In this document: in pieces, positions 23,586-29,823 of the stretch
Position numbering within the stretch: position 1 is the stretch's first letter
Layout: every line of letters starts with the position of its first letter
From: Entomortierella parvispora E1425
Lineage: Eukaryota; Fungi; Mortierellomycota
Length of the DNA stretch: 64,000 nt
Reading direction: 5' to 3'
Assembly: GCA_020891255.1 (NCBI GenBank)
Contig: BQFW01000011.1
Coordinates: 248,001 to 312,000 of the forward strand
Translations under genes and position numbers: made by a program
Notes under the pieces: generated by a model
What the model was told of the DNA's origin: nothing
Databases searched by the model: none
The model's input: only the letters and a program-made list of their open reading frames with translations

Positions 23586-23904
23586 TAGGCTCGAACCAGC
23601 CCTCTCTCCTCGCTACTTGACCTGCCGAAGGCGGTCATATCCTCGTAGAGGGGCTGGGGGATAATATGGCCTTTTCCTTGTCATAGATATAAAAGGAAGG
23701 GGCGTAAGGGTCTTTACATGCAATTCTTCATGATTTCGAATGAGCCCAAAATGAAAGACGCACAAATCCCATGTAAAGACCCTTAAGCACCTTCCTTTTA
23801 TATCTATGACAAGGAAAAGGCCATATTATCCCCCAGCCCCTCTACGAGGATATGACCGCCTTCGGCAGGTCAAGTAGCGAGGAGAGAGGGCTGGGTCGAG
23901 CCTA
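23586..23904. mobile_element. MITE, 319 bp, 135-bp TIRs, 9-bp TSD (Mutator/MULE-like)
   Basis: TIRs 23586-23720 and 23770-23904 are near-perfect reverse complements (TAGGCTCGA.CCAGCCCTCTCTCCTCGCTACTTGACCTGCC...). Direct repeat GTGTACATA at 23577-23585 and 23905-23913. Confidence 0.93.
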
Positions 23905-24291
23905 GTGTACATAACGGATTGGTGCTGCCCCTCAAGCAGCTGCGGGTTTTCATTAACGAGCCCACGAAAGAAATGCTGTGACGCACTCCTGCGGCGTTTC
24001 AATCTGTGCTCTCTCTTTGTCATTTTCACTCGTTCACTCTCTCGATTAATCGTCACCCGTCCTTCCTCCTTCTCTGACCTTTCCCTTCGCACCCAGTCCA
24101 CTATCCCGCTCGCGGGGGTTGAACCCGGCTGCCTTCTTTTCACGCTTTCTCTCCAGTGCACCACGGTCAGCCGCCTTCTTGCTCGATCTTCCTCTCCCTC
24201 TTCTCGCCCACCTAACACTACATCCCCCATCACTTTGTTACCCTTGTCTTTCATTTCATTCCAAGAGGCCTGCCGATAGAGAGACATACAG

Positions 24292-27186
24292 TTGGATAGG
24301 CTGTTACTCATGAAATACGAACAAAGGAGAGACATATCCGTGCCCCGGATGGCGGTCGAAAAATCGAGGCGAAACACCAGTGTTACCAAGAACGGTTACA
24401 AGGGCAGCAGAGAGGTCGAGACCCAGAAATGGTTACTGGACCATGACGGTGTTGATCGCTCGGGACTTAGTGCAAACTTCGAAAATACCAAGCGCCACGT
24501 TGATCATGGTTTGAGTACGCTTTTGTCTTATGAGAATTGGGAACAATCTCTTCAAAAAAGAAACTGGCAAGTTGCAGCCTTTTACAATGACCTGCGAGCG
24601 TCGCATCTCCCTGCTCGTGAAGTCATCGTCAATCGTTTAGGCCTTCCACGTACTGTTAGGCATGCACCACAGCATCCGAAAAGCTCACAACTACACATTG
24701 TGCTTGTTAATCCACAGGGCAACTTTAACGCTGCTCAAACAGGCATTGGCGACCATGCTGATTTTGGCGGGCAACTGATTTATAATGAAAATCTTGGAAA
24801 AGCGCTCGGTCGCTTGGGAGTCAAAGTCGACATCCTAACCCGTCGTTGGGATAACGGACGATGGGGAAATCAATTCGCGGCACCGAGTGATTTTTATCCA
24901 GGCAATCCTAATGTGCGGATTTTGCGTTTTAATGCCGGCCCAACGGATTCTCGTGGAAATTACTCATTCTTGAACAAACAGGAAATCCTAAAGTATTTGG
25001 ATGAATGGGTCAGCAATGTCATCGCATTCTATAAAGCGGAGGGGGTCTTCCCTCAAGTAAGTGCGGGACACTATGCAGATGGCGGTTTGGCTTCGGTATT
25101 GTTGCAAGAGGAGGCAGGCATACGGGTGGGAACGTTCACCATGCACAGTGGCGGTGCTCAAAAAATGGACGCCTTTCTTCCCAGAGACATTGATCTTCAG
25201 GAACGGCCACTTTCTCAAGATGCTAGCTTTGCAAAGTTTCGCTTTGATCAGCGTATCGCGGCTGAACGTCTAGCCATTGAAACTGCACAGCACATAGTAA
25301 CTAGCACTGGTGAGGAGGTCAGAAACCAGTATGGTCACTTTTTGTACTCGGATGTCATCGATTTAAAAACAAAAAAGGACGACAAGCTTTTTCACGTCAT
25401 ACCCCCTGGAATTGATAACGACATCTTTAGCCCTGATGCGATCTCTGAGGTCCACGCGCAGACAGTTTCCTTTATTGTGGCGTCCATCGAGCACGACATT
25501 CCTCTGGAGCGGCGTGGTCTACCCATTGTCTTGGTGGCGGGTCGACTCGATGCCAAAAAAAATCAGATTGCGACGGTGCGCGCTTTTGCTGAGACACGCG
25601 AGTTACGTCAGAGTGCCAATTTGATGTTGATGCTTACCGGCGGACGCGAAGCATTTGATAACCCAGGCGCCGCTTTTCCCAGCGAACAGCAGGCGGCTGA
25701 GAAGACGATCGCGGAGAAGATCAAAAAAGTGCTTGATCAAGGTAATATGAGGGGCGACTGTGTGATTGTGCCTGGCTTGAACAATACACAAAAAGAGATT
25801 GCCGCGGCCTACAATTATATCGCGAGCCCAGAAATACGGGGAGTTTTCTGCCATGCAGCGCTCCATGAGCCATTTGGCCTGATGCCTCTCGAAGCCGCTG
25901 CCTGCGGACTGCCAGTGGTGGTGACTAAAAATGGTGGGCCGAAAGAAATCTTTCAGAGCGTTGACGGTGAAGAATTCTGTGTTTTTATCGACCCACAACT
26001 ACCTTCAGATATTGCAAAAGGTCTACTACAGGCACTCGTGCCTGAAAAATGGGTGCAGTTACAAAAGAGTGCACTCAGCCGCGTGGCAGATCGTTTCAGT
26101 TGGAATACCACGGCCAGAGAATATTTGAGACTCATGCTCAATACCATTGCCCGCAGCCCCACTGGAGGCCATCCTAAGGCTGACCATGTACGTGCGGTAT
26201 GCTTTGCGCCTTATCCATTGCTCGCCGAATTTACTCGAGCTCCACTGTATGCTAAACTGGAAGCAAGTCGTAGGAGCCTTGGGTCATGGGCCCTTCTGGG
26301 GGCTTTCGATGTCGACTATACAATGTATCATCCTAAGACAGGCGCTGCAGAATCGGCGGCATTGGCCAGGTTGCTGGACGATCACTCCATGACATTGTGC
26401 TATGTGACTGGGGCAGAGGTTAGCCAGGTACTGGCACGCGTTGAACGAGGAGAGTTGCCCATGCCAGACGCTATATGTTCATCAGTCGGTACACGAATGT
26501 ATCTACATCTTGGAAACGGGATGTTTGTGCTCGACCAAGAGTTGCAGGATACCTTCAGGCAGCGTGGTTTCGATAAGGAATTATTATTAAGAGTGTCACA
26601 GGAGCTAGCGGTCAAGCACGGCTTGTCTACTTTTATTCAGCAGCCCGGCAACAGCGGCGATGAACAAGCATTCAAACTTAGCTTCCATTTTTTGGGTAAT
26701 CCTTCTGAGACCGGCCAAGGTCTTGAAGCGGTACGGGAAGCTTTTGCGCAAAGGCTGTCCCAGTTGGGCATCATGTGCAAAGTCGTGGTGTGTGAAGAGG
26801 TGGCATATAACAGGGATTTAACCACTTATCAGGCGAAGAAGTTCTGTCTGGACTTGGTACCGGAAACCAAAGAATTTCCCATCCATCAATTATTAGAAAA
26901 GGTGCCGCGGGTTTGTGTCCTCACGGCAGGAGATAGCGGCAATGACATTGGGTTGTTGTGTGATGTGCAAGTGCCTGGAATTTCGGTAGTCGTTGGAAAT
27001 GCCCACCACGATTTGATCAGCATGGTGCATGCCCGTACTGCAGAAACCAAAAATCCGGCGCAGCGGGTTCTCAAATTGGCCACTGGTGTTCAACGTACCG
27101 TTTATTTTCCAGAAGCATCGAATCTTGGCCCTGCAAGCGTCGCCAAAGGTGTCGAGCTATTGCTTTCTTCAAGAGAGTTTTATTGA
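24292..27186 (+). CDS. Bacterial-type sucrose-phosphate synthase-like GT4 glycosyltransferase fused to a sucrose-phosphate phosphatase-like HAD domain (964 aa, intronless; exact start uncertain)
   Basis: GT domain: HIVLVNPQGNF..DHADFGGQLIY..LGVKVDILTRR, HYADGG, FTMHSGGAQK, RIAAER, QYGH, FHVIPPGID, GRLDAKKN, HEPFGLMPLEAAACGLPVVVTKNGGP, FSWNTTAREY. HAD domain: FDVDYT (26308), YVTG, PDAICSSVGT, FKLSF, LDLVPETK, AGDSGND (26929). Confidence 0.88.
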   Translation: MDRLLLMKYEQRRDISVPRMAVEKSRRNTSVTKNGYKGSREVETQKWLLDHDGVDRSGLSANFENTKRHVDHGLSTLLSYENWEQSLQKRNWQVAAFYNDLRASHLPAREVIVNRLGLPRTVRHAPQHPKSSQLHIVLVNPQGNFNAAQTGIGDHADFGGQLIYNENLGKALGRLGVKVDILTRRWDNGRWGNQFAAPSDFYPGNPNVRILRFNAGPTDSRGNYSFLNKQEILKYLDEWVSNVIAFYKAEGVFPQVSAGHYADGGLASVLLQEEAGIRVGTFTMHSGGAQKMDAFLPRDIDLQERPLSQDASFAKFRFDQRIAAERLAIETAQHIVTSTGEEVRNQYGHFLYSDVIDLKTKKDDKLFHVIPPGIDNDIFSPDAISEVHAQTVSFIVASIEHDIPLERRGLPIVLVAGRLDAKKNQIATVRAFAETRELRQSANLMLMLTGGREAFDNPGAAFPSEQQAAEKTIAEKIKKVLDQGNMRGDCVIVPGLNNTQKEIAAAYNYIASPEIRGVFCHAALHEPFGLMPLEAAACGLPVVVTKNGGPKEIFQSVDGEEFCVFIDPQLPSDIAKGLLQALVPEKWVQLQKSALSRVADRFSWNTTAREYLRLMLNTIARSPTGGHPKADHVRAVCFAPYPLLAEFTRAPLYAKLEASRRSLGSWALLGAFDVDYTMYHPKTGAAESAALARLLDDHSMTLCYVTGAEVSQVLARVERGELPMPDAICSSVGTRMYLHLGNGMFVLDQELQDTFRQRGFDKELLLRVSQELAVKHGLSTFIQQPGNSGDEQAFKLSFHFLGNPSETGQGLEAVREAFAQRLSQLGIMCKVVVCEEVAYNRDLTTYQAKKFCLDLVPETKEFPIHQLLEKVPRVCVLTAGDSGNDIGLLCDVQVPGISVVVGNAHHDLISMVHARTAETKNPAQRVLKLATGVQRTVYFPEASNLGPASVAKGVELLLSSREFY

Positions 27187-27751
27187 ATTTCTCTGATATT
27201 GTTGTCTTCGGAAGAAGGAGAGAGAGTATGATTGACAGGTAAGCAGTTTGAACGTGAGTGCCCAACGCACAAAGGAGCGCGACACATCCATTCCCAGTCC
27301 TGTTAATCAAACCTGCCGCGTCTCAAATGTGCCCCGTCCTTTGTTTTCACGTAGGGCATCAAGTCACCCTCAAGATGCCAACAAGGCTGCCCGTATGCCA
27401 CCGTCTCAGCAGCCGTAATCTCTCCAACATCTCCAGTTTGAGCCGTGTAGTCACCGTATTGCGATTGTAGGGAGAAAGAAGTACCAATAGATGGAGAGAG
27501 AAAATAGGTCAGCCATTAAACAATCGTCCTACAAGTCAAATTCTATGGCCTTGCAAGGGACAGACCTGGTCCAAAACGCCCAGGTGGATACGTATGTAGG
27601 GCATTCATTTACCGCCGCGTGCTTGAGTTTCAAAAAAAAAATCGCTAAGCCCGCTTCCCACGCACACATTCCAGGGAAAAGAGATTTGCTGATCGACTGT
27701 GCACCGAGATTTATTGATCCGCCAACAATGCCCCACAGTACGTCCCGGGCG

Positions 27752-29823
27752 TTACACATAGAACCTCTTCTCCAAATCCTTGATCACCTCCATCCATGGC
27801 GTAATTATTTTCCGGAAGAGTTCACGGATTTCCCTTTTGGTGCTTTCGTAAGGAGCACTATCTCCTGGTGATGCCTTGAACCAGAAGAATTCTGTGTGTG
27901 TCATCCGATCGCCCCCATGTTGGCACGAAATGTCATACTGATTCGCTACAAAAATTGTATGCACGATCTTCTCCAGCAGGTACACAAAACCAAGGCGGTC
28001 ATGATCATGCTTGGTCAAACTTAGGAGTTCCTTGAGAGTGACCTCGGGGAAAGTACAAAGCGGCAATAATTTGACTTTGCAGCTGGTTTTGTACATCGCA
28101 AGAAAGCGGTCTGCGAGTTGTCCTGAATATCCTATTTTGAACCCAACACTTGAATGGAAGTCTTTGGGTGACCAGGAGAAAATTATTATGTTAAAAATAA
28201 TAGCCACACGTGTCTGATGCAAAACTTCAATTCAGTGGTAGGATACGGTACCTTCAATAAACCGCACATCATTAGCCCTAATATCCTCTTTGCATTCCAT
28301 GATATAAACATGTCCTTTTCTGAGACATTCCTCGCGAAGCTTTTGTTGTTTTTTTTTCGTAAATGATCCAATGCCTTCTCGGCCGTCCCCGGAGCTAAGA
28401 AATTGAAAATATGAACAAATAACAGTTCTTAAATTCTTCTTAATTGAAGTATCAAAGTACCCTGTCAAGTCTACATGAAGGTCAGGCCAGTGCTTCAATG
28501 ACATACATTACCACATTACCTCTATTAGGCATAGCATCTTACTCGTACACACAATTGGAAATTACCGTTGAACTTTTCGGCTGTAATGATGGTTTCCTCT
28601 CTCCCTGCAAAGTTGAAAGTAAGGTCTTTGTACTCTCTCCCTTCTTTCTGATCCTTCAAAAGGATGGAGGAGCTTACTTCGAGTCGGGCCAGTAAGGAAG
28701 CAGGCATACCGAAACGATAGAGGTGTCCACGTTGAAGCATGCTTCGTCTGTGTCTAAAGCATAGATAGCCCCATTCGTCCTGCAGAGAGTGCCTCAAACT
28801 ATGGCTTTGTTCCTTGCATCGAATCCCGTCTTTGGAGAACGAGGTACATGTCACTTGCCGGGATTCGCCTTTGCAGTGGAGCTCACAGAAGTCGCCTCTC
28901 TTGGAAACTTTGACGATGCATGAGATACCATTGAGATATGTTCCGCAGCAAAATATACCACTGGTGGCCCTCGGCTCTTGCTGCGCCCTTGGAACTCCTC
29001 TCCTTTCGTCAAAAGATTTGGCCGATAGCGATAAGTCGATGTTTTGAGCTAATACATTCAGATCAATTACTCCATTGACCAAAAGTCCTGGACACCAGGG
29101 CTCAAACCATCGATCACTCCCAGGCACAGGCAACTCTTCAGGAGCGTCATGGGTGAAATTTGAAAAATTGCTGACATTGCTGACTTCTGGTCCGCCTCGT
29201 TTCACAGACTCAACTCCGGCTTGGTTTGGTGATTTGGTTGCAAAAGTCGTCGAGATGTCACCAGGAAAGCCCTCATCGTCAGAATCAGAATCGGATAAAA
29301 CTATGACATTGCTGCTGCTGCTAAGAAGTTTCAGTCTGCTCTGATCCATAGACTCAACTCCAGTTCGATTTGATGACTGCGCTGCAAAAGCTGTCGAGAT
29401 GTCAGTAGGAAAGCTCTCGTCGTCATAATCCGAGTCGGATATAACTATAATAGTGTTGCTGCTGTTGTTGTTATCCGTGTTGCTCTTTGACTTTTGCGGT
29501 ACAGAATCAATTACTTGGATACTGTCATCCGATGGCTCTTTTAGTGGTGGTGCCACCACAGCAGCGGGTATCGGTTTGGCGATTTGGTGGGCTGCACTCT
29601 GAGACTGACGTCGAAAGATTGGTTGGACAAATAAAGCATGGCCGCTGACATATCCCTTGTCGCCCTTGGCCAAGCGCAGTGTTCGATTGATCCTCTTTTC
29701 CTCGTCATTCACGAACACATCGATATATCTGCGAATGTTCATGTAGTTGGGCTTTTTGGGCCAAGCTTGGGCATCGCAAAAGGCCTTTTCCGGGAGGGCG
29801 AAGTAAAAAGGTTTGAAAAGCAA
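27752..29823 (-). CDS. Spliced gene for a T5orf172/MUG113 (GIY-YIG-like) domain protein with upstream Cys/His zinc-finger-like motifs and a Ser/Asp-rich linker; exon limits and start approximate
   Basis: Three minus-strand ORFs in order: CCGTYLNGISC..FCELHC..CTSFSKDGIRC..LCFRH; KGHVYIME; FKIGYSGQLADRF..LEKIVH..C..HTEFF. A plausible GT-AG junction separates the last two. Confidence 0.65.

Follow-up and report, generated by a model that had tools for sequence, protein, structure and literature searches.

A putative sucrose-synthesis fusion gene of bacterial origin in the genome of the fungus Entomortierella parvispora E1425

Introduction

In plants, cyanobacteria and certain bacteria, sucrose-phosphate synthase (SPS), sucrose-phosphate phosphatase (SPP) and fusions of the two are textbook enzymes. 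Fungi are considered users of trehalose, polyols and glycogen rather than of sucrose, which they are not known to make. In this study, we describe a gene of Entomortierella parvispora E1425 (Mortierellomycota) in which an SPS-like glycosyltransferase of family GT4 is joined to a phosphatase of the HAD superfamily. The gene lies at positions 24292-27186 on the forward strand of a 64,000-nt stretch of DNA (hereafter the window; contig BQFW01000011.1, positions 248,001 to 312,000, assembly GCA_020891255.1), to which the coordinates below refer. It was acquired from bacteria, is integrated in the fungal chromosome, is transcribed and is under purifying selection; in addition, its sequence makes it fairly probable that it is a functional fusion gene whose product makes sucrose.

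The single-domain GT4 SPS of Halothermothrix orenii (HoSPS; PDB 2r60, 2r66 and 2r68) has the same GT-B fold as the glycosyltransferase half of the fungal protein, a collinear catalytic domain, the same donor-side motifs and the same presumed acceptor-side motifs; the fungal gene, however, adds a 114-residue N-terminal region and a 339-residue HAD domain, and belongs to a separate, long-branched clade. The single-domain SPS-like proteins that neighbour it in the tree are about as long as HoSPS and 40-47% identical to the fungal glycosyltransferase (GT) domain. Canonical SPS-SPP fusions (TIGR02472 plus TIGR02471; Flavobacterium P0083 and P0091) and plant SPS display the same domain order and the same presumed two-step chemistry, yet they are 24-28% identical to the fungal protein, the HAD half of which stems from another branch of the S6PP family (25 bits against TIGR02471). 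The pairing of a HoSPS-type GT4 domain with an S6PP-family HAD domain looks, from sequence, like a fusion independent of the canonical one. Synechocystis SPP (1s2o) and NtdB of Bacillus subtilis (3gyg) share the HAD core and cap type of the phosphatase half, but at 17-18% identity (Foldseek), and the fungal HAD domain is approximately 90 residues longer. Finally, SPS-like GT4 proteins are encoded in the chromosomes of certain Dikarya (Favolaschia claudopus P0115, Mycena sanguinolenta P0118 and Cirrosporium novae-zelandiae P0006) and constitute a sister group; unlike the Entomortierella protein, to which they are 44-45% identical, they possess no HAD domain, and a common origin is rejected (approximately unbiased (AU) test, p 6e-12).

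SPS-like GT4 genes have thus already been annotated in a few Dikarya. Literature searches returned no description of a fusion of a HoSPS-type GT4 domain, a divergent S6PP-family HAD domain and an N-terminal extension, nor of the presence and expression of such a fusion in a Mortierellomycete, nor of its link to Oxalobacteraceae or to a type III chaperone.

Results and Discussion

Coding sequence and domain architecture

An earlier note on this DNA, prepared from the letters without database searches, had described an intronless open reading frame (ORF) of 964 amino acids (aa) at 24292-27186. The frame is indeed single and unbroken and is collinear with bacterial proteins from residue 45 to its end, leaving no intron. 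The length of 964 aa is correct for the open frame as counted from a TTG codon, but not for the likely coding sequence: since this is a eukaryotic gene, translation is expected to start at one of two in-frame ATG codons, 24310 or 24349. A public protein copy (P0001; 945 aa, 100% identity, encoded on a contig of 2,100,617 bp) starts at 24349, and its residue numbers are used throughout. The parts of the gene are as follows.

24349-27186, plus strand: likely coding sequence of the fusion protein, 945 aa plus stop (100% identity to P0001; alternative ATG at 24310)
24349-24480, plus strand: fungus-specific N-terminal 44 residues (alignment; tblastn homology begins at 24481)
24481-24690, plus strand: pre-catalytic linker (..VAAFYNDLRASHLPAR..), conserved in the bacterial fusion proteins too (alignment, tblastn)
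24691-26166, plus strand: glycosyltransferase domain, GT4 (GT-B), H. orenii SPS type (residues 115-606 of P0001)
26167-27183, plus strand: phosphatase domain, HAD-IIB, S6PP family (residues 607-945 of P0001; Pfam, alignment, AlphaFold model, fold match)

Pfam assigns residues 405-582 to Glycos_transf_1 (E 5.7e-16) and residues 672-920 to S6PP (E 1e-18). Every GT4 and HAD motif that had been quoted for the two halves is present in the translation, which reads VNPQGNF, ADFGGQL, GHYADGGL and LHEPFGLM in the first half and FDVDYT (DxDxT), YVTGAE, ETKEF (with the Lys) and GDSGND in the second.

The glycosyltransferase half

The proposed resemblance to HoSPS is real, as the best PDB match is 2r60 (E 4.5e-97, query 134-617 against chain 8-458). 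Likewise, SPS, plant SPS and sucrose synthase lead the NCBIfam models for the N-terminal half, and SPP models lead for the tail; none of them reaches its equivalog cut-off. The assignment of the N-terminal half to the bacterial-type SPS-like GT4 domains is upheld by both comparisons. Its motif residues in P0001 are given below.

Presumed acceptor side and catalytic His: DFGGQ (G140, Q142), HYADGG (Y242), HSGGAQK (H266, S267, K272) and R302
Donor side and catalytic Glu: GRLDAKKN (R399, K404), HEPFGL (E507) and E515

In SPS of Thermosynechococcus (TeSPS), activity requires H158 and E331, the UDP phosphate is bound by R249 and R253, and E339 contacts the ribose (PMC7264703). With the 3-residue offset of chain 6kih taken into account, TeSPS H158, E331, R249, R253 and E339 align to P0001 H266, E507, R399, K404 and E515, respectively; all five are invariant in the clade alignment, and position 404 is a Lys in HoSPS also. 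Furthermore, the six HoSPS residues presumed to contact fructose-6-phosphate (G33 and Q35 of DFGGQ, Y128 of HYGDGG, S152 and K157 of HSLGAQK, and R180) are all identical in the alignment with P0001.

The phosphatase half

The S6PP profile (PF05116) scores 68.3 bits against a gathering cut-off of 20.3. The HAD motifs, in P0001 numbering, are the following.

Motif I: DVDYT (D654, D656)
Motif II: T687-G688
Motif III: K841
Motif IV: GDSGND (G861-D866; D862, D866)

D654, D656, T687, G688, K841 and GDSGND occupy invariant or near-invariant columns in an alignment of 75 relatives and are all kept in the fungal protein, and the C-terminal half is therefore, as had been suggested, catalytically complete with regard to motifs I-IV. 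The earlier reservation that motif II reads TGA instead of TGR is of no concern, because the residue after TG varies within this HAD subfamily (N in 34, A in 12, R in 8 and V in 7 of the 75 relatives).

An AlphaFold (AF2) model of the HAD half (pLDDT 92.2, pTM 0.91) retrieved Synechocystis SPP (1s2o) as its top PDB fold (Foldseek; E 3.5e-14, TM-score 0.69 by target, 18% identity), followed by NtdB and then by trehalose-6-phosphate phosphatases. A profile search of 1.84 billion representatives returned 473 relatives, nearly all of them stand-alone S6PP-family proteins of 300-400 aa of uncharacterised function. From these comparisons, the HAD half is classed as a divergent member of the S6PP family rather than as a canonical SPS-SPP tail.

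Bacterial origin of the gene

Among 5.8 billion cluster representatives, only two clusters, both bacterial, exceed 60% identity to the fungal protein. The nearest homologues are listed here.

P0002: 70% identical, 1072 aa, on three peat or soil metagenome contigs
P0003/P0113: 67% identical, 1040/1055 aa, NCBI MES2743439.1, 'MAG: Pseudomonadota bacterium' (MAG, metagenome-assembled genome), GCA_040384025.1
P0004/P0114: 42% identical, fused
P0005: 45% identical, GT only
P0006: 45% identical, GT only, fungal

The remaining homologues are at most 40% identical. The contigs of P0002, P0113, P0114 and P0005 are plainly bacterial, with tight gene spacing and genes for CysS, SBP_bac_3, GGDEF, UvrD, LeuA, EgtB/EgtD-like and flagellar proteins. 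The P0113 contig encodes a LeuA with 89-91% identity to that of Janthinobacterium, Massilia, Rugamonas and Duganella, so that this MAG can be assigned to Oxalobacteraceae; the P0002 contig is placed no finer than phylum level (Atlas). When 185,579 prokaryotic species representatives (GTDB) were searched with a profile of the HAD half, the fusion was found in one, the Oxalobacteraceae MAG, and plasmids in PLSDB contain no close relative, the best match being Nostoc at 40% over the GT half. As judged by sequence, the nearest relatives of the fungal protein are thus a very rare clade of Pseudomonadota fusion proteins of about 1040-1070 aa, and not Halothermothrix-like proteins.

A tree of the GT domain was inferred from 69 rows (IQ-TREE, LG+C20 PMSF) and rooted on the canonical SPS-SPP fusions; HoSPS itself is not among the rows, and the radiation of single-domain SPS-like proteins is taken to be the HoSPS type. 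P0002 and P0003 form the sister group of P0001 (support 100/99), and these three join P0114 and P0005 (100/99). The sister of this clade is the fungal trio of Cirrosporium, Favolaschia and Mycena (96/85), and both together nest inside the single-domain SPS-like proteins (40-47% identical). The canonical fusions, as the outgroup, are separated from P0001 by a 100/100 branch and do not group with it. AU tests, for which the groups were named after the tree had been inspected, rejected a clade holding the four bacterial sequences but not the fungal one (p 0.003) and also the union of all fungal sequences in one clade (p 6e-12). The nesting of the fungal gene in bacterial sequences bears out the horizontal acquisition that had been postulated.

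The HAD half repeats the order of relatedness of the GT half (74, 70 and 38% identity), which argues that the fusion was transferred as one piece. At the DNA level, the fungal gene is 73% identical to that of P0002, with dN 0.195, dS 1.17 and a ratio of 0.17, and the two bacterial copies differ from one another by dS 0.71; these values indicate purifying selection and a donor fairly closely related to the P0002/P0003 bacteria. Neither flank of the ORF was found to hold a trace of the bacterial N-terminus or of the sequence around the donor gene. The donor was probably a soil bacterium of the Burkholderiales, related to the Pseudomonadota that carry the two close homologues, from which both enzyme domains would have arrived together as a single unit.

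The Mycoavidus endobacterium of the strain was considered as a source and rejected: no named Mycoavidus match occurs among the homologues of the fusion gene, and the sequenced culture had been cured (PMC8759367).

A few Dikarya carry HoSPS-type GT4 genes without a HAD domain in real chromosomes, and an SPS-like gene in a fungus is therefore not unique in itself. That of F. claudopus (L012 8001-9440) is intronless, and that of C. novae-zelandiae (L013 8001-10834) presumably has introns, as its span of 2834 nt encodes 667 aa. Separately, a large family of proteins of about 820 aa (P0007-P0064; Rubrobacter, Chloroflexota) unites a HoSPS-type SPS with a PfkB sugar kinase in one chain and probably couples fructose phosphorylation to sucrose-phosphate synthesis in one gene. 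In a mine-drainage metagenome (run X3), a 249-nt contig matches the ORF at window positions 26217-26465 with 3 differences, and the gene or its host fungus is thus present in the environment beyond the sequenced culture.

Integration in the fungal chromosome

The E1425 assembly comprises 19 contigs with a GC content of 49.4% and is based on Nanopore, HiSeq DNA and TruSeq RNA data from an endobacterium-cured line (PMC8759367). The ORFs around the fusion gene carry fungal families (HsbA, Cupin_1, CotH, alpha/beta hydrolase), and a spliced gene follows on the minus strand. The features flanking or covering the gene are these.

23586-23904, no strand: foldback repeat, similar to a miniature inverted-repeat transposable element, with 140-nt arms (96% complementary) and a 39-nt loop, ~445 bp upstream of the ATG
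24051-27139, plus strand: unspliced contig of run X2, read as mRNA, 3089 nt without a joint, depth 10.8 (neighbour 28.8)
27704-29823, minus strand: convergent fungal neighbour gene with a T5orf172 domain; 90-nt GT..AG intron at 28162-28251, spliced in X2

The ORF was found in two sequencing runs of 2021 from one sample (X1 and X2). In X1, a contig of 7460 nt spans from 23952 to beyond 28700 with zero differences and unites the fusion gene with its spliced fungal neighbour, at a depth of 76.6 (left flank 65.5). A linkage to an intron-containing flank is hence present, at a depth like that of the fungal flank, and the warning of the earlier note that the ORF might be a bacterial contaminant or a misassembly does not apply.

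It is highly improbable that the gene reflects contamination or a chimeric assembly, or that an old fungal gene was instead taken up by bacteria. Such explanations could draw on the absence of introns, on the 70% identity to bacterial proteins and on the left junction, which lies in a repeat that is uncrossed by short-read contigs (the short-read assembly breaks only there, at the high-copy foldback repeat 23586-23904 left of the ORF). They could also draw on the fungal sister group of the whole clade and on the GC content at third codon positions (GC3) of the bacterial gene copies (0.55-0.59), which is below that of their neighbours (0.69-0.84; for the MAG copy, 0.59 against 0.84 for leuA). 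Against this stand the depth and the single contig reaching into a spliced fungal gene, the GC content of the ORF (0.494), which equals that of the window (0.491) and not that of the bacterial homologue loci (0.54-0.63), the curing of the culture (PMC8759367), and the nesting of the gene among four bacterial sequences that come from three or more genomic contexts, with rejection of a bacteria-only clade. Depth, contiguity, composition and the curing of the culture together led us to reject contamination or misassembly.

In four runs bearing the same species label, no match to the ORF of at least 80% was found, an absence that is suggestive only, because the searched data are contigs. One of them, X6, keeps the right flank with the T5orf172 neighbour at ~88%, its similarity ending at 27743, ~560 bp past the stop codon of the fusion gene. 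The foldback repeat marks the left edge of the strain-unique region; it is high-copy in the genome and shows very high depth in another same-species-label run (X4).

Transcription and retention of the gene

The contigs of run X2 total 24 Mb and leave intergenic stretches uncovered, one has a loose end of Illumina adapter, and one leaves out 28162-28251 of the minus-strand neighbour; the ends of the omitted piece are CT..AC, equivalent to GT..AG on the strand of the gene. Owing to this patchy cover, the adapter end and the intron joint, X2 was read as RNA-seq. The evidence for expression comes from this run, since no run in the index is labelled RNA; an RNA library has been reported for the same culture (PMC8759367). 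The unspliced 3089-nt contig of X2 covers 24051-27139 and, read as an mRNA, implies a pyrimidine-rich 5' untranslated region (UTR) of ~300 nt. In the course of its capture, the gene would have lost the first 136-167 residues of the bacterial proteins and gained the 44-residue N-terminus, the pyrimidine-rich 5' UTR and fungal transcription.

A transcribed gene may still be an evolutionary passenger, either a physiologically inert recent acquisition or one in which one of the two activities has been lost. The gene was seen in one strain lineage only, its region is rich in transposable elements, and its branch in the tree is the longer one. Moreover, its GC3 (0.48) is just under the 0.49-0.69 of the fungal ORFs nearby, and its codon usage correlates less with that of its fungal neighbours (0.35) than with that of the bacterial P0002 gene (0.54). 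However, all 945 codons are intact at a dN/dS of 0.17 over a dS of 1.17, the catalytic residues of both domains are all kept, and the transcript contig reaches about one third of the depth of the neighbour. We consequently regard an inert passenger as improbable.

Predicted function

Should the gene be functional in sucrose formation, as we favour, the cytosolic GT4 domain would transfer glucose, in the cleft of its GT-B fold, from UDP- or ADP-glucose onto fructose-6-phosphate to give sucrose-6F-phosphate. The fused HAD domain, with D654 as the presumed nucleophile and D656 as the acid/base, would then remove the phosphate to release free sucrose, rendering the step irreversible. The simplest role for sucrose would be that of a compatible solute or of a sugar that cannot easily be used again; the roles named in the earlier note (osmolyte, cryoprotectant or carbon currency) are putative. 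In this scheme the substrate, the product and the function in the organism are all deduced.

A number of observations weigh against sucrose synthesis by a functional gene. The GT domain scores 212.5 bits against the NCBIfam SPS equivalog TIGR02472 (cut-off 576), and the HAD half falls below the cut-offs of both SPP equivalogs (TIGR01485, 37.6 against 183.65 bits; TIGR02471, 25.3 against 209.75 bits). By sequence, the best PDB match of the HAD half is NtdB, a kanosamine-6-phosphate phosphatase (E 0.0014), with SPP at E 0.28, and its motif I contains an odd Tyr at a position that is Asn, Asp or Gly in relatives. In the tree, the branch leading to the fungal protein (0.29) has about double the length of the bacterial branches (0.13-0.17). 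Furthermore, the reading of run X2 as RNA comes from the behaviour of its contigs, and sucrose is a putative product. The failure to reach the SPS cut-off is uninformative, because HoSPS-type proteins also miss it: the HoSPS-type P0116 and the SPS-PfkB fusion P0050 score only 296 and 288 bits, and even the canonical Flavobacterium fusion P0091 reaches 548; scores across the clade of the fusion gene are 212-235 bits.

Some of these points would equally fit an enzyme of the same origin and architecture with another product, in which a different donor or phosphorylated acceptor is used and the HAD domain dephosphorylates whatever results, for example mannosylfructose-phosphate formed from GDP-mannose, or the product of a different ketose- or polyol-phosphate acceptor. 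The GT domain is 40-47% identical to other HoSPS-type proteins, from which its clade is set apart by a long, well-supported branch, and lies below all equivalog cut-offs; the HAD half is 18% identical to SPP (Foldseek) and by sequence nearer to NtdB, and certain of its uncharacterised stand-alone relatives adjoin unrelated GT4 genes. Nevertheless, sucrose enzymes are the top matches at every level, the presumed HoSPS acceptor motifs (DFGGQ, HYxDGG, HSxGAQK and the Arg of RRI) are retained, and a gene of GH68, a sucrose-acting family, directly follows one bacterial homologue. Another product therefore appears to us unlikely, albeit worth serious consideration, and sucrose continues to be the favoured one.

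Bacterial homologues and a possible effector origin

The bacterial versions of the protein carry 136-167 extra N-terminal residues that are lacking in the fungus, a feature that is new here. This extension is Ser/Pro-rich, stands where the fungal protein has its 44-residue N-terminus and has no counterpart in the fungal protein or in the DNA upstream. It has no match in Pfam, and its look-alikes in the Atlas do not exceed 0.53, which is noise level, although the list contains N-termini of type III secretion system (T3SS) effectors.

The bacterial loci differ in their neighbours. P0114 (1043 aa), from a flagellated bacterium, is followed 11 bp downstream by a gene for a GH68 levansucrase/invertase (E 3.9e-97; L006 5947-10585, also L007). 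GH68 enzymes act on sucrose, and the pair could possibly form an operon that makes sucrose and then polymerises or cleaves it. Downstream of P0002 lies a gene for an MFS sugar transporter, and the neighbours of both P0114 and P0002 hint, independently of the domain comparisons, at a connection with sucrose. In the Oxalobacteraceae MAG, an ORF for a type III chaperone of the CesT family (E 9.9e-12) ends 19 bp before P0113/P0003 (L008 9548-13168; L001 1618-5292); no chaperone gene adjoins P0002 or P0114. Sixty bp upstream of the P0002 start, a TTCG-N16-TTCG sequence of the Ralstonia hrpII-box type is present (L002 4680-4703), for which ~0.9 chance matches are expected per 14-kb contig; since no such box precedes the CesT/P0113 pair or P0114, it is not a consistent signal.

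A precedent for an effector of this kind is RipTPS of Ralstonia solanacearum, a trehalose-6-phosphate synthase that became a type III effector through the addition of an N-terminal translocation domain (PMC4278537). The comparison applies to the bacterial homologues only: both cases concern a disaccharide-phosphate synthase of Burkholderiales with an extra N-terminal region, and one homologue lies beside a type III chaperone gene. RipTPS, however, belongs to GT20 rather than GT4 and has no fused phosphatase, the fungal copy is without the N-terminal region, and secretion of the bacterial homologues is putative. Because of the N-terminal extension and the CesT gene before one homologue, the donor gene may have encoded an injected effector. 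The low GC3 of the bacterial genes relative to their neighbours, given above, accompanies these features. That the bacterial progenitors were type III-secreted 'sugar-farming' effectors, captured by Entomortierella without the secretion N-terminus, is a speculative and rather doubtful extension of the above.

If it were true, soil bacteria resembling Oxalobacteraceae would inject an SPS-plus-SPP sucrose factory into a eukaryotic host, possibly a fungal hypha, where UDP-glucose and fructose-6-phosphate of the host would be turned into sucrose and harvested by means of the neighbouring transporter or levansucrase. Entomortierella would then have lost the secretion or chaperone-binding N-terminus and would now use the enzyme for itself, which would represent a GT4 counterpart of RipTPS and a fungus domesticating an effector of its bacterial associates.

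Significance

The fusion architecture is very rare, being confined to the single prokaryotic species representative mentioned above and a handful of metagenome contigs, and its presence in Entomortierella constitutes a clean, datable transfer from bacterium to fungus (dS about 1.2). The donor lineage belongs to a family, the Oxalobacteraceae, whose members are known to live on fungal hyphae and in association with them. Should the connection with CesT hold, it would indicate that interactions between bacteria and fungi involve a novel class of effectors that produce metabolites. Finally, a transcribed Mortierellomycete gene that would cover both steps of sucrose synthesis makes it directly testable whether any fungus makes sucrose.

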